Of a stretch of DNA of 64,000 bases, positions 3,571 through 58,386 are shown one piece after another (positions within the stretch are counted from its first letter, which is position 1; the number at the start of each line of letters is the position of its first letter). Origin of the DNA: Macrostomum lignano (taxonomy: Eukaryota); NCBI GenBank assembly GCA_002269645.1, contig NIVC01002501.1, positions 1 through 64,000 of the forward strand, given 5' to 3'. Made by a program: the position numbers and the translations under genes. The notes below the pieces were generated by a model. The model searched no databases. It was not told the origin of the DNA and was given only the letters and a program-made list of their open reading frames with translations.

Positions 3571-3973
3571 TAGGGATTGCAATCCTAGGATCCTGAAAAG
3601 TGTTGTAATATGAACATAATTATGCCCCAACTAGCTTATTATACTGTGCTAATTTCTGTTAAATTCCTCACATTGCGCGGCACCTTTTTAAACCCAACAT
3701 CATAGATTTAAATGTGAAATTTATTCCAATGTAAATTTTGATATATGATTAGCTTCTTTACTACTGATTAATACTTTTATACTACTTACTTAAATGTCAC
3801 AAGACAATGCTGTTTTTCATATACAAAAAGAACATCTCTATAAAAATAAAAAATAGAAGCAAAAATATGTTTAGCACATGTTTTGCCTTAAAATTTCAAC
3901 CCAGAAGCTTAAAAATCTGTATTTTTTATCCTAGGATTGGCCAAATTCTAGAATTAAATCTCAGAATCCCCTA
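3571..3973. mobile_element. hAT-like MITE (TAGGGATTGCAATCC..AATCCCCTA family), older copy
   Basis: Termini TAGGG/CCCTA; flanks ttttactg/ttttacac (6/8 match, putative 8-bp TSD); the body aligns by eye with 39624-39720 and 40085-40370. Confidence 0.65.
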
Positions 3974-27539: not shown

Positions 27540-35335
<7,796 letters not shown>

Positions 35336-37666: not shown

Positions 37667-37986
37667 GAGGCCAAGCCCCCAAAGGCATACATGTAGTGAG
37701 TTTATGTACTTGCTTGACGGATAGAAAGTTAGGGCCGCTGTACGCTGTGCAGAATTGCGTCACCGATGGCTGTAAGACGATTTCGCGTTGCGGTGGGATG
37801 CCCGCAGCCCTTAGTCAGTAAGGCCTTTTTAACTACTCGAATAGTAGCAGTGGTAGTGACTGAAAGAACTATAAAGAAACTACTAATTGTTTTTTAATGA
37901 TGGTGGGTACATCCTTTTTAAAAAATAATCTATCTGGCAAAAAATATTTCTTCACTCCAGTTATTTTTAACAGCTCATCGTCCAGC

Positions 37987-38095
37987 GCTAAGGCGTTGGG
38001 GCCAGGATGGTGATGCATGGGAGGCACAGCCGGCCATGCAGGCTCCTTGGGCGGCATTGCAGGCCAGGATGGCGGGAGGAACGACTGCTGGGCCA
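37987..38095 (-). pseudogene. 5'-truncated, frameshifted copy of the Cys-rich peptide gene
   Basis: Reads AVVPPAILACNAAQGACMAGCAS, then a small insertion shifts ITILAPTP*. The 3' flank matches that of the 57214-57671 copy. Confidence 0.85.
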
Positions 38096-38692
38096 ATGGA
38101 GATCCTGGAAACTCTACTTCGCACTTGGAAAAAACGTTTAAAATAATGACAAGACCAATTTAACATGAAAAATCGATTAATGCGTCGTTTGAGCAGCATG
38201 TGAGGCACAAAATAGTGTGATCGTGAAATTTCCTATCTCCGTAGTGTATTTTCCGGTGAAACCTGCCTTTAAAACTATTTCTGAACGAAAAGCTTCATGA
38301 ATATCGATAGAGCAATAAGAAAGGCACAACATTAAAAGATGAACACTGGATCTGTCTCCTATCAAAAGCAAAAACAATTTTTGTGCTGAAAAAATTAAAA
38401 CCTCCTATCTCTGTAGTGTATTTTTCAGCGAAAAGTTTCCTTCAAAACATTTACCACAGATTTCGAGTGTAGCGTCCTACATGTATATATATGTTACTTG
38501 AGTAGTCCTTGTGTGTCGAAGGGATATAAAAATATTGATCTTGAAACGGACAGAAACTTTCAGAAAAAGCAATGGCTTTCGAAGAAAACGAGAAACAGAC
38601 GCCAGGTGCAGAGGAACCATTTGAATTAATGACCGCAGACAGATGACCTCCGACAGAGTTCATCCGGCATGCATCAAATCCAGTGCCGCCAA

Positions 38693-39056
38693 TTAAACTG
38701 GACCTGCAATGGTGACGGAGGCGCAGGCGGCCATGCAGACTCCTTGGGCGGCGTTGCAGGCCAGGATGGCGGCGGGCACGGCCGTGCCGCCCGTGGAGAC
38801 CCCGGCAACGCCTCCGGCGGCGGCCACGCAGGCGACCCAGACGGTGTTGCAGCCGGTCTGGCAGATCCCGTAGCCGAACAAGGCGCCAAAGAGCCCCGCC
38901 TCGGCCTGCAGCAGCGGCCCGCAGGTCAGCAGCAGCGACACGGTCAGCACAGCAGCGGTGGCAAAGCTGGTGGCTGAATTAACAGTGAAAATGGTTATAG
39001 TTATCGGCAGGGCGTTAATGCGTGTACTTTAAACTGTATTAACTGTACTCACCCAT
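38693..39056 (-). CDS. Small secreted Cys-rich hydrophobic peptide, copy A (94 aa); exons 39056-39053 and 38973-38693
   Basis: ATG-G|GTGAGT micro-exon, 79-nt intron, signal peptide ending AEA. Mature region GLFGALFGYGICQTGCNTVWVAC..ACNAAQGVCMAAC has 6 Cys. TATAAATA lies ~100 nt upstream. Confidence 0.88.
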
Positions 39057-39344
39057 AGCGTATGAATTAAGAATTCTGCTGGGATTAGAATTGGCTTGGA
39101 AATCTAGAGAAGGCTTTGTCGTGTGGGAAGAGTTGAAAAGAGAGACGCGTATTTATAAAATTGCTGCTGACCTCTATACTAGCTCCTAGCTTTTAAATGT
39201 ATAGGTTTTTTTTACCAGCTACCACCAATCACTGTGAGCTGTGGCTCAAGACACACTGTATAGAATATTATCTAATCGTTGTCTGGAAAAAATAAAGCAA
39301 AGTGTCCAAGACTCTCTGATTTAAATTTTCAAATAGCCAAATCG

Positions 39345-39470
39345 AAAACTAAAATGAAAACGAAGAACCTAAAATGGAAAACGAAAAACGAAAATGAAAA
39401 ACGAAAAACGAAAATGAAAAACGAAAAACGAAAATGAAAAACGAAAAACGAAAATGAAATACGAAAAACT
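39345..39470. repeat. A-rich short tandem repeat (gaaaatgaaaaacgaaaaac)
   Basis: Direct reading. Confidence 0.85.
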
Positions 39471-39623
39471 GAAACAGGGAAAACCTGGGCCCGTGCACCT
39501 GATTGTACCTGATTGTGAGTAAATAGCCAGTTGTTTTTAAGAGAAACTTCGATTCACAGTCCACCCGGTAGCTTTTTCTATTCGTGCGCGTACTACGCAC
39601 TCAGCAACTGACAATGTGCCGTA

Positions 39624-40370
39624 TAGGGATTGCAATCCCGGGACAAATTTTTGTTATGATTACAAAAAGTGTTATAATATGAACATAATTGAGCCCAGAA
39701 CTAATTTATTATACTGCGCTAGTTTCCGTTAGATGCCTCGCTTCGCGTGGCGTCTTTTTAAAGCCGCTGCTGTTACCCGAGTGGAAACTAAGTCTGACAG
39801 GATTTTCGTTTTCGTTTTTCAAATTGCTCAATGGATAGACTTGGCAACTGGTATTGGTTGGAAGTTGATAAGCTTCCGCTTGGTTGGTTGGCACCTCGTA
39901 GTTGCTAGTATTTGTTGCTGTGTGAGAGTGAGAGTGGATAGTCTCAATAGATCGAGACAATTTAGAGCTTCAGAAACTTTAATTAATAATTTTCTTTTTA
40001 CACTTTTCTACTCTATACTATCTAAATTCGACAGATAAACATAACAGTACACGATAAATGCATGTATATCGCATTTGTAATTTGTGGCATCACATATTTA
40101 AATGTAAAATTTATTGCAATATAACTTTTTAAATTTGATATTTTGCTTCTTAACTACTAGTATAGTTGTACTTTTGTACTACTTAAATACGTCGCAAGAT
40201 AATGCTGTTTGTCATATACAAATAGATCATTAACTCTATAACAACCAAAAATACGAGCTAGAAGCAAAAAAGTTTAGCGCATATTTAGCCTTAAAATTTC
40301 AACCCTGAAGCTTAAAAATAGGAACTTTTCTGATCCCGGAATCGAAAAAACCAGGATTTTGCAGTCCCTA
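39624..40370. mobile_element. hAT-like MITE
   Basis: TAGGGATTGCAATCCCGG...GGATTTTGCAGTCCCTA with flanks GTGCCGTA/GTGCCGTC (7/8 match, 8-bp TSD). Confidence 0.8.
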
Positions 40371-40389
40371 GTGCCGTCCAATGTGCTTT

Positions 40390-41050
40390 AATTTTTTTCC
40401 GAGTCTGATCAATGGCCGGCGAGACCGCCACCAGAGCTGCAGCCGTTTAGGTCACACGCGGAACAGCTGAGCGCGGAAGACGCGGGGGCTGTTTCTTCTG
40501 GTGGCGAGGACTGGATGCAGAAATCAAGCAGCTCCTCATTGCCAGCCCCGACTGCTAGGAGCTGCAGAAGTCGCCAGCACCCGTCGCACTGCATCCCTAG
40601 GCTTGGCCAGACAGGCCATTGGTCCCGCCTATACTCACTGTGGATGCGCACTCAAAGTGTATGGATGTCCACGCAATAACTATGACTTCTTAAGCCGCAA
40701 CCATCCAGAGGCTGCGACAAAGTTTTTCTACACATGGGCAGCATCGTATCGAACAACGAACCGAACTTCATGAGGAAGAAGATGGAGACCTTTCTGTCAA
40801 AAAACGGGATTCGGCACGTAAGGACGGCGCCCTACCACTGGCGTCCAACGCTCAGGCGAGAGGGCGGTCCAGACGCTCAAAAGGTTGCTAGCTAAGCAGA
40901 AGAGTGAATCCTTGGACGAGCGAGTAGCCCGATTTTTGCTCACCTACGCCGCGTGACGCCCCATGCCACGACCTAAGTTCCTCCTGAGGCTGCACTCGCT
41001 GCTGGATCGCGTTAGACCGGACCTGCCAGCCAGGGTGCAGCAGCAGCCAG
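40390..41050 (+). mobile_element. Degenerate Gypsy-type pol (integrase) relic
   Basis: Broken frames read FWWRGLDAEIKQL..PDC*ELQKSPAPVALHP*AWPDRP and IVSNNEPNF..FLSKNGIRHVRTAPYH-ASNAQA..VQTLK..ARFLLTY..TPHATT, matching integrase motifs with stops and indels. Confidence 0.8.
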
Positions 41051-41454
41051 CTCTGCAGAACCAACGGCATAACGTCCATGCTCATGACTGTCACATCGAT
41101 GTCGGTGACTTCAGGTGACTTCATGCTGGCGAAAGACTGCCAATGGAAGCCGGTGGAAGCCAGCGACAGTGATGGCTTAAACTGTCTCGACGTTCTGCGA
41201 GCGTTGCTTTGAAGATGATCAGGTAGGCAAGCCGGCGGAGTGACTGGTTTGACAATGTTCTATTGACAATTAGAGTTTCCTTCCGTGGTCGTGATCTTAC
41301 AGTAAGAATTGTCTTGTTTAAGTGGGGCTATAGGGGGGGGGGGGGGTTCGGGACAATTTTGGAAGGTCGCGATGCGTCACCTCGCTGTTCATTGTCTCTT
41401 TCCAGTTCCTCCTCCATGCGTAGTGCCCTCCATTCTCTCTTCACGGGTCTGGGC

Positions 41455-42632
41455 TGTGATAAATACAATATAAATATATTGCATGCACGATAAGCAATTA
41501 ATTAGGCCCTAGACAAACCTATTTTTGGAGCGTTCAGAGATTTTAAAGCTATTGGCCTTAATTGCCTATCGCCGGTCGGCGAGTCCTACCAATCTTTCTC
41601 CAATAGTCACAGTACGGTACAAGAAAAGAAGGAACACAGGTGAACACGAACCGAAAGATTTAGAGAGTGATAATCCTATGTGATACAAACTGATAATTGG
41701 CTAGACGATTTAATTTGATTACTTCAAGTTACAAGATTTAAATTCAAGCGGCGCAGATAACTAGAGTTGACAAAATGACGATAACGGTTAATAATAATAA
41801 TTAGATTACGCAACTGGCAAGCAGATCTCAGCTGAGAAGAAGAGGAAGAACCGAACACGACCACGGAGAAGACTCCTAACCCCTGGCCTAAGCCAGAACC
41901 TACACTCAAACGAGAGCCCTGCCGAACCGACCGTTCAACGGAGTACCGACTAAATTCTATCGGCACTGCCCTTCAGTGTGACACTGAGGCCCTCGGGGTC
42001 GAGGCCGCGTACTTGATCAGATCCGACAGTCTCTATCTAACCGCGCTTGATAGCGACGACTTCAGACAGGAATTTGCCGTAGACGTTACGCCACAAGACT
42101 GAAGCGGTTGGGCGGGGAACAAAGTATGGACCGGGGTGACGAAATCAAAACGCCTCAAAGCGCGAACCAAAGGGAAACAGGCCACCGGCCGGGAACAAAC
42201 CAAAACAGGGGACGGAGCAGGAAAGAGAAGGGAAAAAAGTGAGATCCGATTGCCAAACACACATTCATATATAGTCAGAGTCACAACCCCTCAAAACCCC
42301 CTCAAGCCGGGTGGTGGTCGTCTGGCCGGCCGCTTGCTTAAGCCGAATTGCACTGTGCCCGCGGCGCCGGGTAGAATTGAAACTTGCCGCGTGCCAGGGT
42401 CCAGGCCGGTTCTGATTGGCTGGCCGCGCAAAGCGAGGGTTCGCAGACAAAAACTCAACCCTCCGCTGAGTCACAAATGGCGTCTAACTCTAACCTGTTT
42501 ACGCAAAATTGATTCTAACTAACAAGGAAAAAGTACACCAAAAACGTATGACTAAACTAGAGCAAAATAATAATTCAATAACAATAATGCAAAACCTAAC
42601 TAATAGAATACGCAAAAGATGCTCACACTACA
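41455..42632 (-). mobile_element. Solo LTR, family 2 copy 1 (1178 bp)
   Basis: TG..CA termini (tgtgat..actaca) with a 4-bp TSD GGGC; high similarity to 52091-53246. Strand inferred from minus-strand CCAAT/TATA order. Confidence 0.88.
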
Positions 42633-43074
42633 GGGCGTACGGAGTTGAGTGTGACTAATTGCGAGCTTGAATATATTAGAACCAACTGACTCTCTTCGTA
42701 GCCTGACGGTCTTGTTTCATCACGACAGTGGACACTTTCTAAAAAATTACAGATTGACTGTTTCAAAAGAGATCAGTGGAAAGTTTTACTGCCGACTGAT
42801 AACAAAACATGTGTTTTTTGCTAACAAAGCGACTGCCCGTCAAGCACGTCGACTGATTTTGAACTTATTAATTAGTGAAAAAAAGTTTTTTCTGCAAAGT
42901 TGGACACGATAAAACACAGGACAGATTAAGAAAAAGAGGGAAGAGCCTAATAAAAGTCACACCACGCTTAAAGAAACCAATGAGTTATTGCTGTGTGATT
43001 GGTCTTAATCACAGAGCAAACAGACAGGTTTAAGGAAGTTAATTTTTCCAGAGACGGTGTTTAACACAGAAATA

Positions 43075-43392
43075 ACAGTGGTTAACAATTAAAAAGTTCT
43101 GTTACTGAGACGGAGCGCTTAATCAGAGTTAAAAATGGTTAACAATCAGAGTTCTGTACTGAGACAGAGCACTTAATCAGAGTTAAAATGGTTAACAATC
43201 AGAGTTCTGTACTGAGACAGAGCGCTTAATCAGAGTTAAAAATGGTTAACAATCAGAGTTCTGTACTGAGACAGAGCGCTTAATCAGAGTTAAAATGGTT
43301 AACAATCAGAGTTCTGTACTGAGACAGAGCGCTTAATCAGAGTTAAAATGGTTAACAATCAGAGTTCTGTACTGAGACAGAGCGCTTAACCA
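43075..43392. repeat. 53-bp minisatellite
   Basis: gagacagagcgcttaatcagagttaaaatggttaacaatcagagttctgtact, about 6 copies. Confidence 0.95.
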
Positions 43393-43531
43393 CAGAATGA
43401 AATCAGGATTGAATGAGTCAAAAGGGGTTCGCTTCGAGTTCCGCTAATCACAGAGTTAAACTGACAATTCTGTTTTTTAGGGTCCTTGCGGTGACTCGTC
43501 TCGTCTCCTCAACTCTCATTTATCCGATCGC

Positions 43532-44359
43532 TCAGACGCGAAGGAAGAATTCACCAGGCACGTCCTCCAGCTCGTGCGGCAGAGCGGGCAGTCTCAGCAG
43601 GTGGCAGGTGTCCAGGTGGAACAGCACGGCCTGGCAGTCGGTCCCGCAGCGAACCATGCAGTCGGTCAGGCACCTCCTCACGGGCTGCACGGTGCGGTAG
43701 AAAGGCGCGCTGGAGGAGGTCACGTTCAGGTAGACTCGATCAGCCCAGGTGAAGCGTCCGCTGGCTGAAAGTGTAATCCATCATTAGTCATGATCGCGGG
43801 TTATAATCATCTCCTTGGTAACTGGCACATACCCCATGGTCACAATGCGAGCTGGGACGTTTATGCAGGACAGGTTAAGAGCTAGGGGCTAGCCCTGACC
43901 GATGTGAATATGCCGTAGGTTGGAGAGCGTCAGCATCGCTGTTTCCGTTGCAACTCACCTGCATGGACGAAGGTAGACCTGCCGGTACACTGAGTTTCTG
44001 TAAAATCCTCCGCAAATTTGAGCGGGGTTTCCAGCACAGTTCATGTTGCAGTCGCTGTCAGCTGCCTGGCCTAAGCCGCCGTACGAGTTCCCACAGACAC
44101 ATGAACGTGAGTACTGAGTAGCAAAGTACTTGAAGTTTCCATAGGCGCAGATTCGGCTGCACAGTTCCAGGGTCATATTGCTGAGGTCGACACTCAGCGT
44201 GTTCACCGAGTAGGGCCCGATGGTGGACCTGCCTACAAGGCCGGTTATGTCTCGAGTTGGGCTGTCCACGAAGCAGCCCAACGGACTGAATTCGACGCCA
44301 AGGGAGCAGCGGAAGGCGACGCAGCAGCAGAAAAGCGGCAGAATTAATGAGGCCTGCAT
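43532..44359 (-). CDS. Secreted WSC-domain protein with a C-terminal PAN/apple-like module (209 aa); exons 44359-43959 and 43760-43532
   Basis: Signal peptide; WSC signature LGCFVD..MTLELCSRIC..YFATQYSRSCVCGN..DCNMNCAGNPAQICGG..RNSVY; exon 2 CLTDCMVRCGTDCQAVLFHLDTCHL. In frame (630 nt) if the second AG of tttcagccag is the acceptor. Confidence 0.85.
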
Positions 44360-46045
44360 GGTAAGCGGCTCTACAGAGTTCTGTCTACGGGGCAAAAGGC
44401 TTGCGCGTCTATTGCTGCTATACTGGCTGCTTTATGCATTTTGCCCGATCGCATTGGGGTGGCGGGGTGGACGCAGCGGTAATGACCCGCAAATTCAGGT
44501 GAGTGAGAATTCCAGTGGCAGTTGCGCTTTTTTAATCAAACATTTCTATTTTCCTTCTCCAGTTGGAGAGGCTCGCTACCCCCCATCCCCCTGGTCATCC
44601 TACGAAAAACATATGGCTACGCCACTGAGAAGGGGGATGGATAGGATGCAACATAGATTTCCCAAACGTTTTGCTTTGAAGGGAGGAAAAAATAATTTAA
44701 AATATGCAACTCATTCCCCTTCTTTAGCGCTGTGGAGGCTGCCCCTGCTGAGGAGTGACCGCGCGTCCAGCATTAGTTTCTGTCTGTCTCCCGTCCCTAG
44801 GAAGATAACAAGGCAGAGAGAGGGAGAGAGAAAGAGAACCAAAGCAGCATTTTGCGAACTCTTCACAAAGCGGCATAGCAGTACCACCAAAGCTATGTTG
44901 TACGACCGTAAAGTTATTGTGCAGAGTTAGAGTTGTCCTCACAGAATGCTGCAGCTTAACAATGTTTTCATGTCCTGAAAGGCTCTTTCACACAAAGTTT
45001 CAGTTAGCTATCGAGCAATCTTTGACGATCCCATCAATTTGTCACACAATTAAGTGATTCTCTACGAGTGATCAAAAGCGTTCGCACTGCAATTAGTTGA
45101 TTTGAATCCAATTGCGAGAATACAGTATAAGTAGGGGGGGGGGTGGGTGGAGGTGTAGTGACGCTAAATTCGAATAGGCTGCAGATAGGTGCCAGATTTA
45201 ACATCCGCTCGAAGTGAAGTGAACATCAATAAAATTTAAGAGTCAAGACAGGACAGGACGTCAGACATCAGGAGTGCATTTGACATGTAGGAACAACTTC
45301 TTTATTTGCTGCTTCAAACCCATAGAAGGTACAAAAGGAACAAAAGCAGCATTGACAGGATGGGGGATCCGCGCAATAGCAACCCCCATAAGAACAATAG
45401 CAACAGCTGTTTCAGAAGGTTTGCAACAGATAGTTCAACGATGTCCTTGAGTTTCGTGTGTTCGGGTTTGGTCGATTCTAGCATGAAAGTAAGAAAACTT
45501 ATCAAATATGGGTGAACTTGGCACTTCTACTGCTGGTAAATATAGCTGGTAATCCTCGGTGTCCTCAGTGTCAAAAAGCCCAAAATCTTGACAAATATTA
45601 AATGTGCTCACTCGAAAATGAAAACGAAAAGTCGTGAGTAAAGCCTTCGAAGAAGTATACGTAACAGCGAACTTCCAATTCCTTAAACTTCACATTCCAC
45701 CCATTTCATCACATTCCCTAATGGATGAACGGAGCCTTGGCGTTCTGTCTCAATTTTGGCATTTGCATAATGAAGATAGACGGCTGGCAGGGTGTGTTCA
45801 GGGAATTAAAACACCCGGCCAGCTGCCGTAAACCACAGACGTGAAATTGGGTCAATTAAGATGACAAGAGATCCCTGTTAATTAGCTAAAAATCAACTCC
45901 AAGCATTTATCTTAGCTGCGTTAAGAAGCCAGAGCCAGGGAGGTTCTTCTTGGCAACGTATCCGAACTCTTAGGTTCCCATTCGGGAGTACTAGGTATGT
46001 CAACCCCGGGTAGTGCTCCCCTGGGAATTGGACCGGGGATCCCGG

Positions 46046-46902
46046 TGTTAGAGTTTAGGATCTCCGTGTTTTAGGGTCTCCGGCCCGGAGATCACAAACT
46101 GAAAATTGTGTCATTTTAAGATCGCCCACACGGAGATCGGAAGTCTTGTGACAGGTGCGAGCTGGTCACACCGTGGGAGCAGCTGGGGTTCAGGATCTGA
46201 AGCGAGGGGACAGAGTTAGGCTTCGCAATCTTCGCAGGGACGATCAGAAGGGTGGTAAGATGCGATACACTTGGAGTCAGCAAGTCTACATCGTGACCAG
46301 GTGTCTTGGTCAAAACGTGTACAGGCTAGGAGGACTAACCAGGTGTGTCAATGGGAAACACCTCAAGAGATGCTTCCTCCAAGCACCGGCTGAAAGTGCA
46401 TCACCGGTTTTTCACTAAGTGGACATTTACTTCATTACTTTAACAGTAAACAGTTTTCCATTTAAATACACAGTTGTGCGAGCATATACATATAAAACTA
46501 ATGCTACGTTGATGATAAAAATGCCTTTCCACTTCTTATACATGTACGCGTTCAATACCATGACCATTGGTTTTACACAAATGGGGGGGGGGAGATCGGA
46601 AACCGGAGATCCTAAACCAGGACTTTGTTTTTGCGGCCCTGACGGAGAGCTGAAACTGGTTTAGAGTCTCCTGGGGGGAGATCAGAAACTGGTTTAAGAT
46701 CTCCGGGTGCGGAGACCTGAAAATGCCCCGGAGACCCTTAAACGGTTTCAGATCTCCTACCACGGAGACCCATAACCGTTAGAAGTCTCCAGGGGAGATC
46801 CTAAACGGTTTAGGGTCTCCGGGCGGAGATCCTAAACCGTTTAGGGTCTCCGCCCCGGACACCCTAAACTGACCGGACCCCCGGAGATTCTAAACCATAA
46901 CA
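46046..46902 (+). mobile_element. Non-autonomous Ginger-like DNA transposon retaining an integrase C-terminal fragment
   Basis: Termini TGTTA..TAACA with TIR (tgttagagtttaggatctcc vs ggagattctaaaccataaca) and perfect CCGG TSD; subterminal ggagatcctaaac repeats. Internal frame GDRVRLRNLRRDDQKGGKMRYTWSQQVYIV..GQNVYRL..VNGKHLKR resembles the GPY/F region of Gypsy-like integrases. Confidence 0.8.
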
Positions 46903-47294
46903 CCGGGGAGAAAAAAATATTTAAAAAATGGATTTGTAACCTAATTTTTGCCATTTAAATAAGAAAAAGATTCACAGAAAGCAGATTGAAACTCAGCTTA
47001 TGCGAATCAAAGTATGCATTTTCCGCGTCCGGACTCTTTCTGACAAAGGTGCGCGCGCGCAATTTGGTGATGCCACGCTGCAATGCTGTGCCGCTTTTCA
47101 AGAATCGGCAGAAGCAGTTGCGTAGCACATACAGTAGCAATACCCAGCAGCAGATAGCAGCAGACATCAGTGGACAGTGCCATATGGCATCAGAAGGCAG
47201 CTGAAGGCAGCAGGCAGAAGACAGAGCAAAAAAAGCAGCAGACAACTATTGAAGCCGGAATAGAATAGATGGCACCAGGAAGCAGCTAAGCAGC

Positions 47295-47520
47295 TGACAG
47301 TAGCAGACAGCATCAGGCTGCAGCACACAGCAGCAATCTGTAGCAGACAGCATCAGGCTGCAGCACACAGCAGCAATCTGTAGCAGACAGCATCAGGCTG
47401 CAGCACACAGCAGCAATCTGTAGCAGACAGCATCAGGCTGCAGCACACAGCAGCAATCTGTAGCAGACAGCATCAGGCTGCAGCACACAGCAGCAATCTG
47501 TAGCAGACAGCATCAGACTG
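47295..47520. repeat. 40-bp minisatellite
   Basis: tagcagacagcatcaggctgcagcacacagcagcaatctg starts at 47301, 47341, 47381, 47421, 47461 and 47501. Confidence 0.96.
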
Positions 47521-48199
47521 TAACAACCGAAAAAGGCCGTTTTAGAGGTTTTTGGTATTTTTCGAATACAAAAGTGGCATCGAATTTCCGTTTTGTTATT
47601 TCATAATAAAATTCCATCTTTTCAACGCATTTTGACACCTGGCGCAAATCAGGGGACCAAAAATGCTAAACTTTTACAGCAATTTTTTATCAAAACTCGT
47701 CGTCCAAAATTGTTTCCCGAACCTCACTATCAACTTCCTTCGGTCGTAGCTCGTAACTATTGGTTACTTACTATAATGGACTAAACTGGCACTGGCAGAG
47801 ACATTTGAGAGAAACTAATCGCTCCATTGTATTTGGCTCCAGCGTTACAATATTGGGGTCCAACCAGCTAAGTTATCAAAAGAAGCTAGATACCAATCAC
47901 CAGTTTCACCATTATTATTTTTTAGACGCAGGGGGGCTGTGTGCACCCTGGCGCACTTTAAGCGACATAGGCACACAACCGGCGAGAGGCATTACTGCCC
48001 ATTCCGCCGACTCCCCTGAGCAGGCATACAAGCGCGCGGATACGTACGCAGGCACACACTCACACAGGAGTGTACAGCGGCCCTAACTTTATTTTATCGT
48101 TAGGCATGTACACTTTACTGCGCTTTGGGGGGTTGGCTCTCAAGGCCGTTAATTGCACGAGCAGAGCCAAGCCGAGATTCCAATTCAGCCCCAAATTAA

Positions 48200-48272
48200 T
48201 GTGACTGCACTTGGAATCGAGCCTGGGTCGCTGGCACACCAGAGCCTGCGCTAGACCTCTAGCTACGGCCCC
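48200..48272 (-). mobile_element. tRNA-like SINE head
   Basis: Minus strand GGGGCCGTAGCTAGAGG...GGCTCGATTCC shows A/B-box-like motifs; no full cloverleaf. Confidence 0.4.
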
Positions 48273-48482
48273 CTTCCAGTTTCACCATCCTATTATCACG
48301 GTTTTAGTCACATGCAAGATGCAACAGTAATACCCTTCTTTTAAAGTTTTCAATATCTAAAATTCTGTGTTAAATTTTATAAAATTTCATAAACAGTGAA
48401 ATTTTAATAACTCTCTACGTGCTGGTGGTTTGAAAGTAGCTACTTTTGTTCGAAAATAAACTGTCATTAATACCGTACCTAT

Positions 48483-50218
48483 TAGGGAATACAATCCCGG
48501 GTTCCCGGGATCCCGAAATCCCGGGATTAGGCCCATTAGGCCCACAATTGTCCGGGATTCGAAAATCCCGGGATTGCACCATCGGGATCCCGATCCCGGT
48601 TCGCAGTAATTCAATCAATCATTCTCGAGTAGTAGAGTATCTGCAGCTGAGCTATTTGTCACGTGAAGATCATCACCCATTTGTCTTGCTTTGTCTTGTC
48701 TTGCATATGGTACTCGCAGACTAATGTAATTATTATTCAAAAACCTGTGAACAGAGCCTAAGCCCTAAAGCAATGCATGTAGAAGCGAATTCCTCATCGT
48801 TTCCGATCGCAGCGATGACGCTGGCCAAACGGGAGTCAAATTATTGTTCATTTGAACTCTCCCTCTTCTCAAACCCATGCAGCTAAAATCAAGGGGTCTC
48901 GACCTTGCACAGATCAGAAGCCCCCTATGCGACAGACCTCATTCTCAGCACCCTTTAGATTGCCCAGCATGCAGCAAAGGGGTGATGACAGAACTACTTT
49001 AAGCAGTCGATACCTTAAAACTCCTTGGCCGTAGTTGGGATTAGAACAGTGAGACCTTGCTATCCGAATAACCCAAGCTACCATGCAATTCTCCATCTAG
49101 GGCGGGAGGGGGAGGTCTGAGTCTGGACTCTGATCCCCTTCTAACTTGTTATCAGTACCTCGGGCCATAGCTCTGCTGTAGGCTATCATTCCCCAGGTTA
49201 CATCAAAATCGAGTGTGATTTTCCTGAGCTGATACTGGCATGTAAAAAAGCACGTCCATTACGCCAGCCCGTACATCACACTCTAATTCAGAGCTCACTG
49301 TCAGTTTCTTGTTTGCAAAATATTTTATTCTCTTCTACTTTATTATTAAAAGCCCATTAAAATCAGGTTAGATGGCTTCGAAAGCCAAATTTGCACCAAC
49401 AAAGATGGGAAACTTTTTCAATTCCGGGATCCCGGGATCCCGCGATTGGCAAAGTCCGGGATATCCCGATCCCGAGAATCCCGGGATTTTCAAAGTCCGG
49501 GATATCTCGATTCGGAAAATCCCGGGATGGGCAAAACTCGGGATTTTGTATTCCCTACTCGAGACCCCCTGACTTTAGCTGGGTTTGAGATTGAGGAAGA
49601 GTTCAAATGAACAATGATTTGACACCCGTCTGGCAAGCTATAGCGCTGTGATAGGAAACTATGAGAAATTGGCTTCTATTGCTTTAGAGTCTAGACTCTG
49701 TGCACAGGTTTTAGAATAATATAGTCTGCGAGTACCATATGCATACAGTTGCACGTACATTATTACACCCGAAATCTCCTACGAACTGCCACAACTTCAG
49801 TTTTGTATCCCTGCAGCCCTAGCCTTCTCACTAGCCTGCATGCTAAAAATATTAATAAATCAAAAGCATGCCAACTGGGTTTATGATTTTTACCTGACAG
49901 GTAGCTCAGCTGCAGATACTATACTACTCGAGAATGAATGATTGAATTATTGCAAACCGGGATCGGGATCCCGATGGTCAATCCCGGGATTTTCGAATCC
50001 CTGACAAATGTGATCCCGGGATTCAGGCATAATCCCGGGTAGGGATTGCAAAATCCCGGTCTTCTGTCAATCCCGGGATTGTCGGGATCGGCATATCCCG
50101 GCCATGGATAATCCCGGGATTATCAATCCCGATAAATCCCGAGTATTTGTAATCCCGGGATCCCGGGATTGCAAACCCTAATCCCGGAATTTCGGGATCA
50201 CGGAATTGTATTTCCCTA
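48483..50218. mobile_element. Long-TIR (foldback-like) element of the TAGGG..CCCTA family
   Basis: Arms 48483-~48880 and ~49590-50218 are reverse complements (e.g. gagtagtagagtatctgcagctgagct / agctcagctgcagatactatactactc); many ATCCCGGGAT motifs; no clear TSD. Confidence 0.75.
50040..50180. mobile_element. 141-bp hAT-like MITE nested in the right arm of the long-TIR element
   Basis: TAGGGATTGCAAAATCCCGG..CCCGGGATTGCAAACCCTA with flanks ATCCCGGG/ATCCCGGA (7/8 match). Confidence 0.75.
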
Positions 50219-50304
50219 TCTATTATTATCGTTTCTTTTTTATATGACCTATGAAGCGTAAATAGTGTACTTTTCTAATTTTATTTTGTCATTGCGTTTG
50301 CGAG

Positions 50305-50870
50305 GGGGCATCACAAACCCGAAAAATCACAACTCCGAAAAGCGCTTTCCATCATAAACCTGAAATATCATATCATAAACCCGAAATATTATATCATAAA
50401 CCCGAAATATCATATCATAAACTCGAAATATCACAAACCCGAAATATCACAAACCGAAATATCATAACTCCGAAATTGATAGCAACGCACATCATAAACT
50501 CGAAAAATCATAAACCCGAAAAATCACAGCTCCGAAAAACAAAATAGCAACGCCCATCATAAATCCGAAATATCATAAACTCGAAATATCATAACTCCGA
50601 AAGTTCTAGCAATGTCCAACACTATTTTAGCTTTCGGAGTTGTGATTTTTCGGGTTTATGATATTTCGGGTTTATGATGGGCCCTGCTATTAATTTCGAA
50701 GTTGTGATTTTTCGGGTTTATGATATTTCGGGTTTGTGATGTGCGTTGCTATCAATTTTGGAGTTATGGTATTTCGTGTTTATGATGGGCGTTGCTATTT
50801 TGTTTTTCGGAGTTATGATATATCGGGTTTGTGATATTTCGGGTTTGTGATATTTCGGGTTTGATGGGTT
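50305..50870. repeat. Large imperfect palindrome of tcataaacccgaaata motifs (foldback/MITE-like)
   Basis: Left arm has the motif forward, right arm has tatttcgggtttatga; centre at ~50620. A fragment recurs at ~54003-54055. Confidence 0.8.
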
Positions 50871-52090
50871 TCGACCTTCCGGCCCCCTTGTGGGGAAGCT
50901 TTCGGGCCTCAGGTCTCAGAAATAAATCAATTAGAGTCCTGGCCCCCCACTCCTGTCAGATGGTCAGCCCCATGGTAGCTTGATCGTGTGGCGAGCAGTC
51001 TAGGTCCTATAGCTAAGAGAGGGACAGCGAGAGACAAGCAGGGAGAATTTTGAAAGAAGAAATTAGCTAATCCGCAGATCAACTAACTTGCTGCCACCAG
51101 CCCGTGCGCCCTGGCTCACCACACCGAGACTCTCGAAATCGGGCTTCCGACTAGAAGGGGCTTTGCACTTACCTGCCAACTAGTGTCTTTTTGCTGTCTA
51201 TCTCGAAGTCATAGCCGATGATAAGGGACACTGCTGGGACTAGATCGCATTGGCCATGCAGGTACAGAGGGGACTTGTGCAGCGGATTCTTGCAGTGGCG
51301 AGACTATGGGGTAGCTGCATGTACTATTACATTGCTAAATACGAAGAATTGTACTTTTGGCCTTCAACGCGCCAACTAGCCTCTCCTAGCGCTGATGATA
51401 GACTAACTCGAACTTCAGAGACCGCGTGATTCATTACCCGAGCCGCTTGGCGAACCTAGAGTGCACAAAGTACATCTCTGGCGCCGATTTTGCACTATTG
51501 GCAATTTTGCTCATTGATTTGATAGATTGATCGACTGAGAACTGCCTTGCCATTGGTCCACTGTGACCGGCGCCTACTAGCTTAGCTACTCATCTGAGCC
51601 ATCGGCGAACAAAGAAATAAAGCCGACAAAGATAACTGTTAGATTTAACCTTCTCCTTAGTTCACTTCACACTTCAGATTGAATTGGAGTTTAGACTACT
51701 AGCAGTATTATTGAATGACTTCTGCCTCAGCAACAGCACTACTGAACAAAGTGAGCAAAAGTGTGCGCCTAATTCAGCTACTGAAACAGGGGACAGATAA
51801 GGGATCACCCAATCAAGCAAGTCCAGGTAGCCTCTCACCCAACCAATCAGAAACTCAACAGCCGGAGACCATTCCACAGTGACCGAATCGGCTTGATGCT
51901 TCGCAGCTGTAGACTCGGGATGATGCTGACACAATCTTCGCTGATAGCTAGCAGGTGATGATCTTAACTTTGATGTTCGCTGCTGATGACCGGGGGACTC
52001 GTCCTTGATGATGAGGGGGGAAGTCGCAATCCGGGGATCAAGAAACGACGGTCGGGCTCCGGGAACCAGAAATGTCGGGAAGGTTCCTCC

Positions 52091-53246
52091 TGTGATAAAA
52101 GCAATTAGATAATAGCATGCACGGTGAGCAATTATTTAGGCCCTAGACAAACCTACTTGGAGCGTTCGAAGATTTTAAAGCTATTAATCCTAATCGCCTA
52201 TCGCCGGTCGGCGAGTCCTACCAGTCTTTCTCCAATAGCCGCAGGTACAGTACAAGAAAAGAAAGAACACGAGGGAACACAAACCGAAAGATTTAGAGAG
52301 TGATAATCCTATGTGATACAACTGATAATTGGCTAGACGATTTAATTTGATTACTTCAAGTTACAAGATTTAAATTCAAGCGGCGCAGATAATTAGAGTT
52401 GACAAAACGACAATATCGGTTAATAATAATAATAATTAGATTACGGAAACTGGCAAGCAGATCTCAGCTGAGAAAAAGAGGAAAAAAACCGGACACGACC
52501 ACGGAGAAGACTCCTAACCCCTGGCCTAAACCAGAACCTACTCTCAAACGAGAGCCCTGCCGAATCGACCGTTCAACGGAGTACCGACTAAATTCTATCG
52601 GCACTGCCCTTCAGTGTGACACTGAGGCCCTCGGAGTCGAGTGATCAGATCCGACAGTCTCTATCTAAACTGCGCTTGATAGCGACGACGTCAGACAAGG
52701 ATGCCGAATCGTTACGCTACAAGACTGAAGCGGTTGGGCGGGAACAAAACTATGGACCGGGGGTGACGAATCAAAACGCCTCAAAGCGCGAACCAAAGGG
52801 AAACAGGCCACCGGCCGGGAAGCTGGACAAAACCAAGAACCGGGAAAAGAAGGCGAGGCCAAACACACTTTCATATATAGCCAGAGTCACAACCCCTCAA
52901 AACCCCCTCAAGCCGGGTGGTGGTCGTCTGGCCGGCCGCTTGCTTAAGCCGAATTGCACTGTGCCCGCGGCGCCGGGTAGAATTGAAACTTGCCGCGTGC
53001 CAGGGTCCAGGCCGGTTCTGATTGGCTGGCTGCGCAAAGCTAGGGTTCGCAGACAAAAACTCAACCCTCCGCTGAGTCACAGTTGGCGTCTAACTTCTAA
53101 CCTGTTTACAATTTTAGATTTCAACCAACTAGAAAAAGTACACAAAAAACGCATGACTAAACTAGAGCAAAATAATAATCCAATAACAATAATGCAAAAC
53201 CTAACTAATAGAATACAAGGCTATCGCAAAAGATGCTCACACTACA
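52091..53246 (-). mobile_element. Solo LTR, family 2 copy 2 (1156 bp)
   Basis: tgtgat..actaca termini with its own 4-bp TSD CTCC; direct repeat of 41455-42632. Confidence 0.88.
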
Positions 53247-54439
53247 CTCCGCGGGAGAGCCGGTGCTCGGTCCGAGCGGGCCAAAAACACCGGTTTAAAT
53301 AGCCGCCAACTGGACCACAGTTTGTTATAATGGAACACGTCGATTCTGATTGGCTGAGCCGTTTTGTTAAAATGAGCGCCGAATTTTCTGATTGGCTAAG
53401 CTTGTTGCCACCCAGAATCACGTGACCGGGAGATCCTATCAGTTCCCACAGGGTCGTAAAAAGATGACAGGTGCGGCCATAAATCAATCAAAATCGCAAC
53501 AAAATGATTTATGACTTTTCGCGTAGGATTGACAGAAATTAATGAAAAAATATACATTAGAAAGCTCTTATTAAATAGAAGGTGAAGATAATGAAGAGAA
53601 ATCGCTAATCGCTAATCCCAAAGTACTTTTAGGGGTAAAACGCATAGCTGTCAAATCTGTCACACGCTTGAGTGAATCCGAACAATAGGCTCTGACCTCA
53701 TAAATTTTGATGGCCTGTCAAAATGATGAGAAAAACGCTACCGCCCGCATCCTCTCAGACCATCTGGCGCCCGCCTCAACACTGAGTGAGGCGCAGGTGG
53801 CTGTCAGACCAGCTTCGAAAGCGATGATTTATGACCCAAAAAGCTGCGCCTATGTTATTATGACTACTAGTATGGCCAGACATTATATCTAGTATAGATT
53901 CTATGACATTTCGCAGAGAAAGGATAAAGATGCCCATAGCCTGCTGTTAGTAGGCTAGTAAGTTTAGAGCCCATGTGCTTTGGGAAATAGTGCGTCCTCA
54001 TCAGGTTTATGATGGGAAGTGCTTTCGGAGTTGTGATTTTTCGGGGTTATGATGGCGAGGCGAACCGCGTTTGCGCGCTCGGGCCGGCCTGCCTGCCTTG
54101 TGGGGGGGGGTGCCCTTGGCCACTTTCTTCCCCTTCTTTTACAATCGAAACACAGCTTGCCGCAAGTGTACATTTAATTTTATCGATTGATTATTTAAAA
54201 CAAGCTTCTAGTGGTTGGTGTTAAGACTCAAGAGTGAGTGGCATTGAGTGTACCCGAAAGTTGAGAGGAAGCCCATGGGCGGACTATGAACCCTCCTGTT
54301 GTGGAAAGTTGGGCCTTGTGCATTGCATAGTGTACGCTACAAAGGATAGAAGGGAAGAGAAAGAGAACGATAGGATAGCCAATAGCGATAGCATGTGCTT
54401 CTCTCCAGTCCACTCCGGTGGGGGTGTCAGACGGCCCAC

Positions 54440-55260
54440 ACCTAATTTGGCGCCAGGATCACCAAATCGGCGCTAGGATCGCTGAATCAGCGCCGGAATG
54501 CTGAAATCAGCTCAAGAAAACCTAAACCAGCGCTAGAAAGCTCAAATCGGCACAGGATAGCTCAAATTGGCGCGGGAAAGCTCAAATTGGCGCTAGAAAG
54601 CTCAAATTGGCGCGGGAAAGCTGGAATTAGCGGCGAAAGTCAAATTTGGCGCCAGGATCACCAAATCGGCGTTAGGATCGCCGAATCAGCGCCGGAATGC
54701 TGAAATCAGCGCCAAAAAGCCCGGACCAGCGTTGGAAAGCTCAAATCGGCGCAGGATAGCTCAAATTGGCGCGGGAAAGCTCAAATTGGCGCTGAAAGTC
54801 AAATTTGGCGCCAGGATAACCAAATCGGCGCCATGATCGCCGAATTAGCGCCGGAATGTGAAATCAGCTCGAGAAAAACCTAAACCAGCGCTAGAAAGCT
54901 AAAATCGGCGCAGGATAGCTCAAATTTGGCGCCAGAATCATTAAATCAGCGCCGGTCGGCGCCAGGATCGCTGAATCAGCGCGGAATGCTGAAATCAGCG
55001 CCAAAAAGCCCGGACCAGCGCTGGAAAGCTCAAATCGGCGCAGGATAGCTCAAATTGGCGCGGGAAAGCTGGAATTGGCGCCGAAAGTCAAATTTGGCGC
55101 CAGGATCACCAAATTGGCGCCAGGATCCCCAAATCAGCGCTGGAATGTGCCAACGGGCGTAGAAGTGGCAGCATATATCAGCTTGCTACTTCTGGACGCC
55201 AAGTTTAATATACCGGCGCCAATTTCAGCCTTTGGGCGCCCATTTTAGCGCCCTGGCAAG
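54440..55260. repeat. Complex satellite of aaatYggcgc subunits with ~160-200-bp higher-order units
   Basis: The block tggcgccaggat recurs at ~54448, 54647, 54805 and 55097. Confidence 0.85.
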
Positions 55261-55579
55261 GTCAATGCATTTAGTTCTCACGCAATGGAGCCGAAAAAAT
55301 AGTTTTTTTCTTTTTTGAATTAGTGCCATGTATCTTGACAACCAATGCGAGTCAAGTTCTGGCATATCCTAACCATTGTGGGCTGGCCCGCGCTAAGGGA
55401 GCCCACCCCACCGTGGGGCGGACCCCGCTAACGGGCTTTTTTTAGCGTGGGATGGGCTCCGCTAACGGGCGGCCATAAACTGCGGCCCAAGCCCAACTCT
55501 ACTAACCCCCCATATTGCTAGACGGACTGTGCGGCGTGCCGCGTGCAGTAGTCATGGTCTCGCGACTCTCAGAGTCTCA

Positions 55580-55840
55580 GGGCCTTTTCATATTACCAAT
55601 TCCAGAACCAGAATCGGTTCGGAATTCGAAGAAAAACAGCAGTATAACTATTAAACTCTGTTAATATTTGACTGCCTTAACAGCCTCACTTAGCACAATT
55701 TTTCACTTTCTTCTTGGCGACTGTCATTCAATAATAAAAACTTTATAGCACGTATCTCCCTCTAGTTATGGAGACAAAAAGTTTATACTTCACAAATTGG
55801 TTCTTGTTCTGGAACCAGAGCAAGCAATATGAAAAGGCCC
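55580..55840. mobile_element. PIF/Harbinger-like MITE (261 bp)
   Basis: Perfect 15-bp TIR GGGCCTTTTCATATT/AATATGAAAAGGCCC with a 3-bp TSD TCA. Confidence 0.85.
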
Positions 55841-56027
55841 TCAGTCTCGTCTCGTGGTAGAAAACGAAAAAAAGTTAAAATTATCTATAATTTACAGTTC
55901 ACATTAACAATTTTTAGCTCAATTAGGACAGGAGCTTTGCAAATGTTTAACGTTTCATTGAGAAACAGCAAAAACAAATAAATGTTTTATTATTCAAATA
56001 AACGTTTAGACTTTAAATTATCTAATT

Positions 56028-56231
56028 TAGGCATTGAAAGGTCGTTCTAATCCCGGACCAATCCCGGGATTAAGGCCTTGAAATCCCGGGATCCCGATCC
56101 CGGTCTTTTGCAATCCCGGGATTAAAAATCCCGGGATTCGATTCCCAAAAAAATCCCGGGATTCAAATCCCGGATTTTTGGCCCCAATCCCGGGATCCCG
56201 GGATCCCGGGATCCCGGGATTGGAATCCCTA
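56028..56231. mobile_element. Short TAGG..CCCTA family MITE rich in ATCCCGGGAT
   Basis: Same terminal and subterminal motifs as the other copies; no TSD seen. Confidence 0.6.
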
Positions 56232-57213
56232 GTGGTCACCCCCTGGGGTTGGTCACCCCCTGAGGGTGGTGAGGGGTGGTCACCCGGGGGCAGCCCGCCC
56301 CCCCGCCCCCCCCTGCGCCGCCACTGGCTCTAGAGTCTAAACCATAATTGCTACACCATTTAACTTATTTGACTATTTGCTAACTTCATGTATGACACGA
56401 CACAAAATATTAGGAGCATCAGCGTTAATAATGCCTTGGAAGCTTCTAAATAATCGATACCACACTAAGCATTATAAGATTCCAACCTCAAAGCTCACTG
56501 GGGAACAGACTTTGAGCCCGTTCTATAAAGCCATCGTAAGATAAGATCGTTCTTAGCTCCCATCTCCGCAGTGTAAAAGTTCCGGCGTACGATCCAACTG
56601 ACGCTACGACAGCTTTATAGTACGACCCGTTTGTCTTCATTAACTAGTTTGCATTAACAGCGGGAGGTTGAACCTACATTTTCAGAATAACGAACGAACG
56701 AACGTAGATAAGAGACGGGCGGAACGGAGGATGGCGGACATGTACATGTTGATTGGTGGCCGAGGCATTGAACAATTAAAGATAAGGTGGATGGTTAGAC
56801 AGGGCCCAGGGGCAGATAGAGAAAGAAAAAGAGGGGAGCAAGTGCAGGCGCACTCGCAATAAAAATTTAGCGACAAGTCTTAGCCAGCACGTGCTAAAAT
56901 GCCTAGAGTGGAATTTCCAGGAAAGAAAGAAAAATAGATTTCTTGGAAATTCACATGTGAGGAAGACGCACTCACGCCCTTTGCAAGCACAGAGGAACGC
57001 AAGTTAAAACTGTTTTCGCTTCCCTGTCTAACCCCCACCCCCACCCCTCCACCCCATGGCAGGCCGTACGTACGCAGGGAAGGACCACCATAAATACAAG
57101 TAGTTGGGGCTGTTCCTCAGCCAGAAATTCCCCCTGTTCTCGCGACACAAAGTCTGCTGTCAGATTATTGCGAACGAATCGTTCAGCAACAGATCTCACC
57201 TAGCGAATTTGCA

Positions 57214-57671
57214 ATGGGTAAGTATATTATAATTTTATATTAAAAACTCACACAAATAATTAATAAAGGACGCTAGGAACTTGTTTATTCATAAGTCTAA
57301 GAAAAGAACCCATGCTTAAGAATTTAAAATTAGCTCGTAGTACAAGTGTGCATACCATAAACTGCTTTTATTACGTTCGCTTTGATTCAGCTATCCAGTT
57401 CGTCACCAAAGTCGCCCTGCTGGCTTTGCTGCTGATCGGCGGGCCGCAGCTGCAGGCCGAGGCCGGCATTATCGGCGCTGTGGCCAGCTACGGGGTCTGC
57501 CAGACCGGCTGCAACACCGTCTGGGTCGCCTGCGTGGCCGCCGCCGGAGGCGTTGCCGGGGTCTCCACGGGTGGCACTGCCGTGCCCGCCGCCATCCTGG
57601 CCTGCAACGCCGCCAACGGTGTCTGCATGGCCGGCTGTGCCTCCGTCACCCTCCTGGCCCCGACGCCTTGA
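57214..57671 (+). CDS. Small secreted Cys-rich hydrophobic peptide, copy B (94 aa); exons 57214-57217 and 57391-57671
   Basis: Same ATG-G|GTAAGT micro-exon and phase as copy A, 173-nt intron, signal peptide ending AEA. Mature region GIIGAVASYGVCQTGCNTVWVAC..ACNAANGVCMAGC. Confidence 0.88.
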
Positions 57672-58386
57672 CGCCGGACGAAGAGTTGTTAAAAATAACT
57701 GGATTGAAACTCAGTGTTTGGTTTGGTGGAAGTTTCATCTCTCTCCCTCTTTACTCGTAAATGTACTTTTATAATCCGACAGACCACTCACCTCAGTAAA
57801 ACAAAACAGCCAGTATGTCAATTCTCTACATGTCTGCGTTGTTTGTTTTTCTGCTGGCTATCTTTTACTCTAACAGTTCTGCTTAAGCCAGAACTAGCGT
57901 TTGCTATTTTGCCCTGCAGTTTATTCCAATTTTTCAAAAAAAGGACATGGTACCATCATTGAAAAACAAGTAGTTTCTTTTTACGATTTGCAGTCACTGC
58001 GGCTACTACTATTTGAGTAGTTAAAAAGGCCTTACTGACTTTATTTGAGCCGATTTTTTCCTCCGAGACAATTCAAGGACCTGTTTATGCGCAACTTGCA
58101 GTTTGAGCTTATTAGATGCTTTCATTGAGAACAAAGGCGTACCCTGGCTGGAGCTACATTCGTGCATAAACTGTCCACGAAAAATATTAAAAAATCAAAA
58201 TTCAAACTCTCGTCCGAGTTTCAGAGCAAAACGCAGGTGTCTATGCATGTACTAATAAGCAATTCACAAAAGCAAGTTTCATTCAGTTAACTACAGTACG
58301 TGAAACTGACTACAGTTACGAGCGTCTCAGGCTTGCTTTATAACGTTTCATTGTCTTCGCCCTCGCTCCTGCTGCTGCTGCTGCTG

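Follow-up and report, generated by a model that had tools for sequence, protein, structure and literature searches.

The window analysed here is a stretch of 64,000 nucleotides from the flatworm Macrostomum lignano (assembly GCA_002269645.1, contig NIVC01002501.1, positions 1 to 64,000 of the forward strand), and its subject is a pair of small genes, copies A and B, each of which encodes a 94-amino-acid precursor with a hydrophobic, signal-like N-terminus followed by a six-cysteine domain free of charged residues. The two genes lie in divergent orientation with 18.2 kb between them, and the remains of a third copy (the relic) are found close to copy A. A 16.9-kb piece of the deposited contig record agrees with the window at 100% identity and in its coordinates. 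The features of the two genes, in positions of the window and including the 5' untranslated region (UTR) of copy B, are as follows.

39056 to 38693, minus strand: copy A gene, 94 amino acids.
39053 to 39056, minus strand: first coding exon of copy A, with ATGG as its sole coding part (read from the sequence; the span of annotated protein P0001 agrees).
38974 to 39052, minus strand: intron of copy A, 79 nt, GTGAGT...TTCAG, phase 1 (splice sites in the sequence).
38693 to 38973, minus strand: exon 2 of copy A, holding the remaining signal peptide, the mature peptide and the stop codon (translation, tblastn).
38696 to 38896, minus strand: predicted mature peptide of copy A, 67 amino acids, GLFGALFGYGICQ...IAGPV, with a predicted helix, Gly-rich loop and helix and six Cys (translation; AlphaFold2).
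39150 to 39157, minus strand: TATA-like box TATAAATA, about 100 nt 5' of the copy A ATG (sequence; putative function).
57214 to 57671, plus strand: copy B gene, 94 amino acids.
57118 to 57217, plus strand: annotated exon 1 of copy B, consisting of the 5'UTR and ATGG (coding part 57214 to 57217; P0002 model).
57218 to 57390, plus strand: intron of copy B, 173 nt, GTAAGT...TTCAG, phase 1 (splice sites in the sequence).
57391 to 57671, plus strand: exon 2 of copy B, holding the remaining signal peptide, the predicted mature peptide (57468 to 57668, 68 amino acids) and the stop codon (translation, tblastn).
57089 to 57096, plus strand: TATA-like box CATAAATA, about 25 nt 5' of the annotated exon 1 of copy B (sequence; putative function).

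An earlier note on this DNA had described two 94-amino-acid genes on opposite strands, about 18 kb apart and sharing a first coding exon of four nucleotides, and both the sequence and the annotated proteins bear this out; the exon models stand as claimed, with a shift of a few bases in the coordinates relative to a naive reading. The two copies match each other by tblastn with E = 1.3e-42 and 75% identity. An annotated protein from a second M. lignano contig, NIVC01000299.1 (P0001, BOX15_Mlig019107g3), matches copy A at 99% identity, and its span of 364 nt equals 4 + 79 + 281; a further annotated protein (P0002, BOX15_Mlig004286g2) corresponds to copy B with its 5'UTR translated in frame across the ATGG|CT junction. 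As P0002 reads through this junction, the copy B splice belongs to the deposited model, which is probably transcript-derived. A TATAAATA-like box is present about 100-125 nt 5' of the ATG in copies A and B alike.

Signal peptide cleavage is predicted at AEA|G in both copies and would release mature peptides of 67 and 68 amino acids (about 6.2 kDa) with no D, E, K, R or H residue. Each contains 16 Ala, 11-12 Gly, 9-10 Val and 6 Cys, and both are also rich in Thr; the grand average of hydropathy (GRAVY) is 1.26 for copy A and 1.19-1.21 for copy B, values that are high because of Ala, Gly and Cys and not because of Leu, Ile or Phe. The cysteines follow the scaffold C39-x3-C43-x6-C50-x23-C74-x6-C81-x3-C85, in which the spacing is mirror-symmetric (3, 6 / 23 / 6, 3). 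In an alpha-helix, Cys at positions i, i+4 and i+11 point the same way, so that two mutually facing helices are already predicted by the spacing. AlphaFold2 confidently predicts the mature peptide as an antiparallel two-helix hairpin, in which residues 2-26 and 42-64 form the helices and a Gly-rich loop of 15 residues connects them (74 sequences from animals and fungi; predicted local distance difference test score, pLDDT, 87.7; predicted template modelling score 0.70). The precursor model, built on 34 sequences, has the same topology with helices at 19-52 and 66-90 (pLDDT 75). Given six Cys on the facing sides of the helices and the analogy with alpha-hairpinins, nested disulfides C39-C85, C43-C81 and C50-C74 would be the expected pairing. 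Uncharged polar residues (Q40, N44, N75 and Q78) are conserved within both helices. The predicted mature N-termini, GLFGALFG in copy A (38875-38896, minus strand) and GIIGAVAS in copy B, are Gly-rich and hydrophobic, of the membrane-inserting kind; the GLFGA of copy A equals the first five residues of the influenza HA2 fusion peptide, which we take to be probably a coincidence. The signal-like N-terminus, symmetric six-Cys scaffold and uncharged Gly/Ala/Val core that the earlier note had read from the DNA were recovered on translation of both copies, and the disulfide-stapled hairpin that it had envisaged agrees with the confident AlphaFold2 model.

Copies A and B belong to a large family. A word-indexed search returned 286 relatives, and a HMMER scan of 1.84 billion cluster representatives returned 530 clusters (50% identity) at E <= 1e-3, 142 of them at E <= 1e-10. 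E-values from phmmer and hmmsearch against named relatives ranged from 1e-48 to 1e-10, the best outside M. lignano being 1e-31, and a search seeded with the Chlorella-type domain gave just 7 matches. The pattern C-x3-C-x6-C-x(19-29)-C-x6-C-x3-C was present in 346 of 404 fetched members, with a central spacer of 23 in 288, and 308 of 345 family domains held no D, E, K or R (A 27%, G 13%, V 10%, C 10%, T 9%). Both M. lignano copies combine significant similarity to these relatives with the six-Cys pattern in an uncharged domain of about 60 residues after a hydrophobic N-terminus. Animal members were found in Cnidaria (Nematostella, LOC116601956; Desmophyllum; and a EukProt model attributed to Aurelia from its identifier), Placozoa (Trichoplax sp. 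H2, RDD42285.1) and Nematoda, where the single member seen was Heterodera trifolii KAL3122511.1 (P0153). Three fungal phyla are represented, by more than 100 species of Basidiomycota (for example Mycena, Armillaria, Pleurotus, Heterobasidion and Ganoderma), by Clathrospora in Ascomycota and by Gigaspora and Funneliformis in Glomeromycotina, and the single green-algal member seen was the C-terminus of a fused model from Chlorella sorokiniana (Chlorophyta). Percent identity to the M. lignano copies, which the low-complexity composition inflates, was 78-80% for cnidarians, 55-62% for dikaryan fungi, 53% for Chlorella, 49% for Trichoplax and 41-51% for the two Glomeromycotina members.

These relatives carry the database labels 'hypothetical', 'Cysteine-rich protein' or 'Zygote-specific protein', with the exceptions of a Heterobasidion member named 'cep2 cellulose medium expressed protein 2' and a Ganoderma member with the UniRef label 'Hydrophobin'. 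The 'zygote-specific' label presumably derives from a Chlamydomonas 'zygote-specific class V' protein, a putative homologue. The 'Cysteine-rich' and 'Zygote-specific' proteins share with copies A and B their length, signal-like N-terminus, six-Cys spacing, uncharged composition and a C-terminal P-T-P, and the M. lignano copies differ from other members in a hydrophobic mature N-terminus that is seven residues longer. Cysteine-rich and zygote-specific labels had been named in the earlier note, correctly, together with a distribution over fungi, oomycetes, algae and some animals; sequence searches recovered members from fungi, from one green alga and, patchily, from animals, and the putative oomycete members were not confirmed. 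Its description of the system as undescribed holds for function. Scanned against Pfam at E <= 10, the two proteins matched LNR alone (E = 1.5, meaningless); an NCBIfam scan gave no match, a sequence profile search of the PDB matched thanatin alone (E = 0.34), Foldseek offered no usable neighbour among PDB structures, and our literature search found no study of the family. A scan with two animal-type peptide patterns, to which the sensitivity is limited, covered 185,579 genomes of bacteria and archaea and the IMG/VR viral contigs and returned no relative.

Purifying selection acts on the core of the peptide. Over 53 core codons, copies A and B differ with a synonymous divergence (dS) of 0.098 and a non-synonymous divergence (dN) of 0.035, a dN/dS of about 0.36 that rests on 8 changes (four synonymous and four non-synonymous, so that counts are small). 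Over the 34 codons of the signal and N-terminal part, dS was 0.65 and dN 0.42, and blastn detected no similarity between the UTRs and introns of the two copies. Synonymous divergence is thus about seven times lower in the core. This suggests a mosaic, in which gene conversion or a recent exchange restricted to the core may have acted on top of purifying selection.

We propose that the product is a secreted, disulfide-stapled, self-associating structural or surface-active peptide, a reading that leads the alternatives and to which we assign somewhat less than an even chance. We infer a course in which copies A and B would be expressed host genes of an old and widespread eukaryotic family, the precursor would enter the secretory route and lose its signal peptide, and the mature peptide would fold to an antiparallel hairpin with a Gly-rich loop and three nested disulfides. 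Its apolar or polar-uncharged outer surface would then pack against its own copies, a membrane or another extracellular hydrophobic surface, so that the peptide could serve, much as hydrophobins or proteolipids do, as a building block with a structural or surface-active role. Three properties constrain the mechanism. It has neither charge nor an amphipathic face. The helix faces are uniformly conserved, the entropy of inner and outer faces being 1.68 and 1.58 bits in helix 1 and 1.86 and 1.87 bits in helix 2; with an outer surface as conserved as the inner face, the hairpin most simply packs on all sides. Finally, the lowest 19-residue Hessa sum of the mature peptide was +4.0 kcal/mol (family median +3.3, with no member below 0), compared with -0.5 for the Escherichia coli ATP synthase c subunit and -6.3 for SP-C by the same sum, and with at least +4.0 in every window the peptide would probably cross the translocon and reach the lumen.

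Several points weigh against this proposal. The Hessa values are plain sums with no weighting by position, and percent identities are raised by the low-complexity composition. The case for self-association is drawn entirely from uniform conservation and an apolar surface; a GRAVY of about 1.2 is as high as in true proteolipids, which leaves some probability to membrane integration; and tandem multi-copy arrays, of three genes in Nematostella, are also typical of effector genes. A more specific form of the proposal, which we consider doubtful, is that the family comprises ancient, pan-eukaryotic secreted 'cystine-stapled proteolipids', charge-free helical hairpins that would form a homo-oligomeric coat, film or pore as the helical counterpart of hydrophobins in zygote, egg or spore envelopes or on epithelia. 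Such an assembly would account for almost all residues being kept constant between mushrooms and flatworms.

Of the other functions, a membrane-permeabilising defence peptide or toxin survives best, although we regard it as rather unlikely. The secreted hydrophobic hairpin would in that case insert in target membranes and form pores or otherwise disrupt them, as its signal-like N-terminus, apolar helices and Gly-rich hydrophobic mature N-terminus might suggest. Positive charge and amphiphilic structure are, however, listed among the properties considered general for antimicrobial peptides (PMC7191063), and copies A and B are neither net-positive nor amphiphilic, so the product is not a classical cationic antimicrobial peptide. 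The multi-copy or tandem arrangement here and in Nematostella is in keeping with an effector, but the extreme conservation across phyla, with all helix faces equally constrained, is unlike that of diversifying effectors, and the dN/dS of the core combines with a very low dN. The best Foldseek neighbours do include the alpha-pore-forming toxin hairpins AhlB and SmhB, at non-significant E-values of 5-9. The antimicrobial or toxin function suggested in the earlier note is therefore weakened by the absence of charge and amphipathicity, the 78-80% identity between flatworm and cnidarians and the equal conservation of helix faces.

A second possibility, which is distinctly unlikely, is an integral two-span membrane proteolipid whose helices would stay in the bilayer after signal cleavage and oligomerise like c subunits. 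The hydropathy, the absence of charges, helices of 23-25 residues and many small-xxx-small motifs would suit such a protein, and JGI gives one member from a metagenome the label 'uncharacterized membrane protein'; against this, Hessa sums are at least +4 kcal/mol in all mature 19-residue windows and never below 0 in the family, conserved Asn and Gln lie inside both helices, and three inter-helix disulfides would need to form within the bilayer. Mycobacterial c subunits are the top Foldseek matches of the precursor in the PDB at a non-significant E = 2.2 (best E for the mature peptide 9.2; Foldseek is weak on short hairpins), and neither ATP-synt_C nor any other membrane family was matched in Pfam.

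A secreted signalling ligand of the hormone, pheromone or gamete-recognition type, binding a conserved receptor, is less probable again, and we would give it only a slim chance. Ligands tied to a fixed receptor typically show conservation as high as this, and the database names hint at zygote-specific expression of an algal relative; a Daphnia gene with the same database name, a putative family member, responds to acute hypoxia (PMC9548574). An uncharged apolar surface would nevertheless be unusual for a soluble ligand, fungi, algae and animals share few receptors, the genes occur in multi-copy arrays, and no receptor candidate was found.

The remaining evidence concerns the origin of the genes. 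In a neighbour-joining tree of the domain, which draws on some 60 columns of low complexity and lacks robustness, A and B are sisters within a tight clade of cnidarian and several further sequences at 76-85% identity. The family tree is incongruent with species relationships, and Heterodera falls among fungi. The Heterodera protein is of the dikaryan-fungal type (Y51, 'FGTVTAG', 'GTP'), and may either have been acquired horizontally by this plant-parasitic nematode or come from fungal DNA contaminating the assembly. GC content at third codon positions (GC3) was 0.85-0.87 in the copies and 0.78-0.87 in neighbouring host open reading frames (ORFs), an equality that does not support recent horizontal transfer. 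In Nematostella (OW051985.1), three tandem same-strand copies are found within 15 kb (5922-6110, 17237-17425 and 20953-21141), with nearly identical upstream regions and an intron acceptor that abuts each ATG. The NCBI 153-residue model LOC116601956 seems to fuse far-upstream exons with the second of these copies. Two further loci have acceptor-like sites 1-6 nt 5' of the ATG. Whereas the Nematostella intron ends exactly at the ATG, that of M. lignano follows ATGG and splits the start region, 4 nt further in; both may descend from one ancestral intron near the start, the start codon of M. lignano having since moved into exon 1. Contig NIVC01000299.1 is colinear with 49.5-30.2 kb of the window at 92-99% identity and is thus an allelic or homeologous copy.

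That the genes were recently taken up from a fungus or alga, or that they are an assembly contaminant or artefact, is highly improbable: this reading would account for the patchy animal distribution and the mismatch of gene and species trees (Trichoplax at 49%, Heterodera with fungi), but is opposed by spliceosomal introns in both genes, flanking animal genes (SLC3A2-like, rhodopsin-type G-protein-coupled receptor, and MSP-domain), presence on two homeologous contigs, the host-like GC3, nearest named relatives that are cnidarian and not fungal, the start-proximal intron common to Nematostella, and the lack of any bacterial, archaeal or viral relative with the patterns used. Contamination and an ORF artefact were rejected on the introns, the surrounding host genes and the homeologous copy, and a compositional signal of recent transfer on the GC3 shared with host genes. 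The earlier suggestion that the genes were acquired horizontally and then intronised finds no support in the host GC3, the start-proximal intron of Nematostella and two other loci, or the cnidarian-type clade, although an ancient transfer is conceivable.

The relic lies 0.6 kb downstream of copy A.

37951 to 38112, minus strand: relic, a 5'-truncated, frameshifted B-type pseudogene fragment (residues about 57-87 and B-like 3'UTR; tblastn, blastn).
37813 to 37904, minus strand: further flank of the relic, homologous to DNA 3' of copy B (57952 to 58040; blastn, 84%).

Its tblastn match (38112 to 37951, E = 5e-10) is confined to residues 57-87, and the similarity ends abruptly 5' of residue 57 or so. 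Blastn aligns the relic with the coding sequence and 3'UTR of copy B at 83%, and its 3' DNA is homologous, at 83-84%, to the 3'UTR and further flank of copy B and not to those of copy A. Near the C-terminus it carries 5 extra nt relative to copy B, and the version on NIVC01000299.1 carries 1 extra nt. By these alignments it is a 5'-truncated, frameshifted pseudogene of the B type, and its presence on both contigs with different indels implies that it predates their split. An intact, separate upstream half was considered and rejected, as tblastn gave no match for one. A third, broken copy at about 38.0 kb had been noted before and is confirmed by these matches, although the interval then assigned to the family (37987 to 57671) takes in both genes and loses the 3' part of the relic, which reaches 37951 with flank homology to 37813. 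The expansion that had been inferred is a modest one, of two genes, a pseudogene and homeologous copies.

The surroundings are repeat-rich. Exceptionally dense micro- and minisatellites occupy 10266-33692, including a 19-mer x83 (10266-11857), AGAC x224 (14998-15894), CTCTCC x191 (16398-17499), CTGT x265 (20908-21960), a 40-mer x31 (26052-27230) and a 41-mer x16 (33030-33692), and these arrays explain the extreme GC and AT skews of the composition profile and many of the long spurious ORFs. Between the peptide genes, a 1.2-kb direct repeat (41454-42632 and 52090-53246, 88.7% identical) may be a dispersed or transposable element; its second copy overlaps a 228-residue ORF (52616-53302) with no Pfam match. 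Inverted repeats (48543-48902 against 49559-50012, 80-89%) and a self-complementary palindrome of about 550 bp (50314-50863) are also present, as are a dispersed repeat shared by the left part of the window and the region just 5' of copy A (3698-3916 and 40088-40319, 77.5% over 236 bp) and an AT-rich island at 4001-6000 (GC 0.29) amid about 52-56% GC. Long ORFs at 6871-8874, 22175-23095 and 61045-62115, all on the minus strand, have animal-type domains and a GC3 of 0.78-0.87 in a region of about 47% GC. They are of three types: an SLC3A2-like heavy chain (SLC3A2_N and alpha-amylase domain), a rhodopsin-family receptor and a major sperm protein (MSP) domain ORF, the MSP match being weak (E = 1.3e-4; 22.2 bits, under the Pfam cut-off of 25.9 bits). 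Directly downstream of copy B, a 379-residue ORF (58387-59526, minus strand) has long poly-Gln/Glu runs and no Pfam match. On NIVC01000299.1 an annotated 815-residue kinesin (Kinesin/KIF9 domains) lies 3' of the copy A counterpart, and from colinearity with 13613-20364 of that contig its counterpart, broken by minisatellites, should be found at about 30200-35400 of the window on the minus strand.

A domain of about 60 residues that retains 55-80% identity over a flatworm, cnidarians and dikaryan fungi, and 41-53% in the other named lineages, with no domain model, structure or published function, marks a gap in the protein-family catalogue. The predicted architecture, three nested disulfides on a charge-free Ala/Gly hairpin, is outside the usual classes of cysteine-rich effector. 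As M. lignano is amenable to RNA interference and in situ hybridisation, the two genes give a direct route to the role of the family. If the product is a self-assembling surface-active or membrane protein, it would represent a new structural class of possible materials interest; if it is a minor matrix component only, the result would be the routine annotation of an uncharacterised family.

The family was also compared with several known systems. Bacterial hairpin bacteriocins (sactipeptides, glycocins) are set apart by the lack of an NCBIfam match and of any relative in the 185,579 prokaryotic genomes with the patterns used. The ATP synthase c subunit is a similar hairpin of two Ala/Gly-rich helices with like length and GRAVY, but it is predicted to insert into membranes, has an essential carboxylate and lacks both Cys and a signal peptide. 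The peptide family is not predicted to insert, and the M. lignano peptides gave no ATP-synt_C match in Pfam, a Foldseek E of 2.2 and Hessa sums of at least +4 and have no acidic residue. Saposin-like proteins (NK-lysin, amoebapores and SP-B) are alpha-helical and lipid-active with six Cys in three disulfides, and have four to five amphipathic, charged helices; the peptide family differs in Cys spacing, has two helices and gave no Pfam SapB match at E <= 10, and the NK-lysin control was far more polar. Fungal hydrophobins have eight Cys and a beta-barrel, and bacterial chaplins form amyloid. These proteins are likewise small, secreted, cysteine-stabilised, largely uncharged or hydrophobic and multi-copy, and self-assembly at hydrophobic interfaces is a possible functional analogy, even though the peptide family has six Cys, is predicted to be all-alpha and gave no Pfam hydrophobin match.

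The closest parallel in architecture is with the plant alpha-hairpinins (EcAMP1, VhTI, BWI-2c and Luffin P1), which share the helix-loop-helix form and carry one CX3C motif per helix with bonds C1-C4 and C2-C3 (PMC7191063); it is by analogy with them that nested disulfides are proposed here. Their motif C1-X3-C2-Xn-C3-X3-C4 recurs in the M. lignano peptides as the sub-motif C39x3C43...C81x3C85 on two predicted antiparallel helices, and no sequence match to solved hairpinins was found in the PDB. Alpha-hairpinins are confined to plants, are charged or hydrophilic (for example Luffin P1), have four Cys and two bonds in 30-50 amino acids, and in some cases show homology to the vicilin N-terminal region (PMC7191063), whereas the present family has six Cys in 67-68 amino acids, a 15-residue Gly-rich loop and zero charge, and is found in animals, fungi and an alga. 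The genes and their family were already in databases under uninformative names and so are not a new sequence class; what is newly recognised is the six-Cys, charge-free extension of the alpha-hairpin staple, together with its breadth and extreme conservation.

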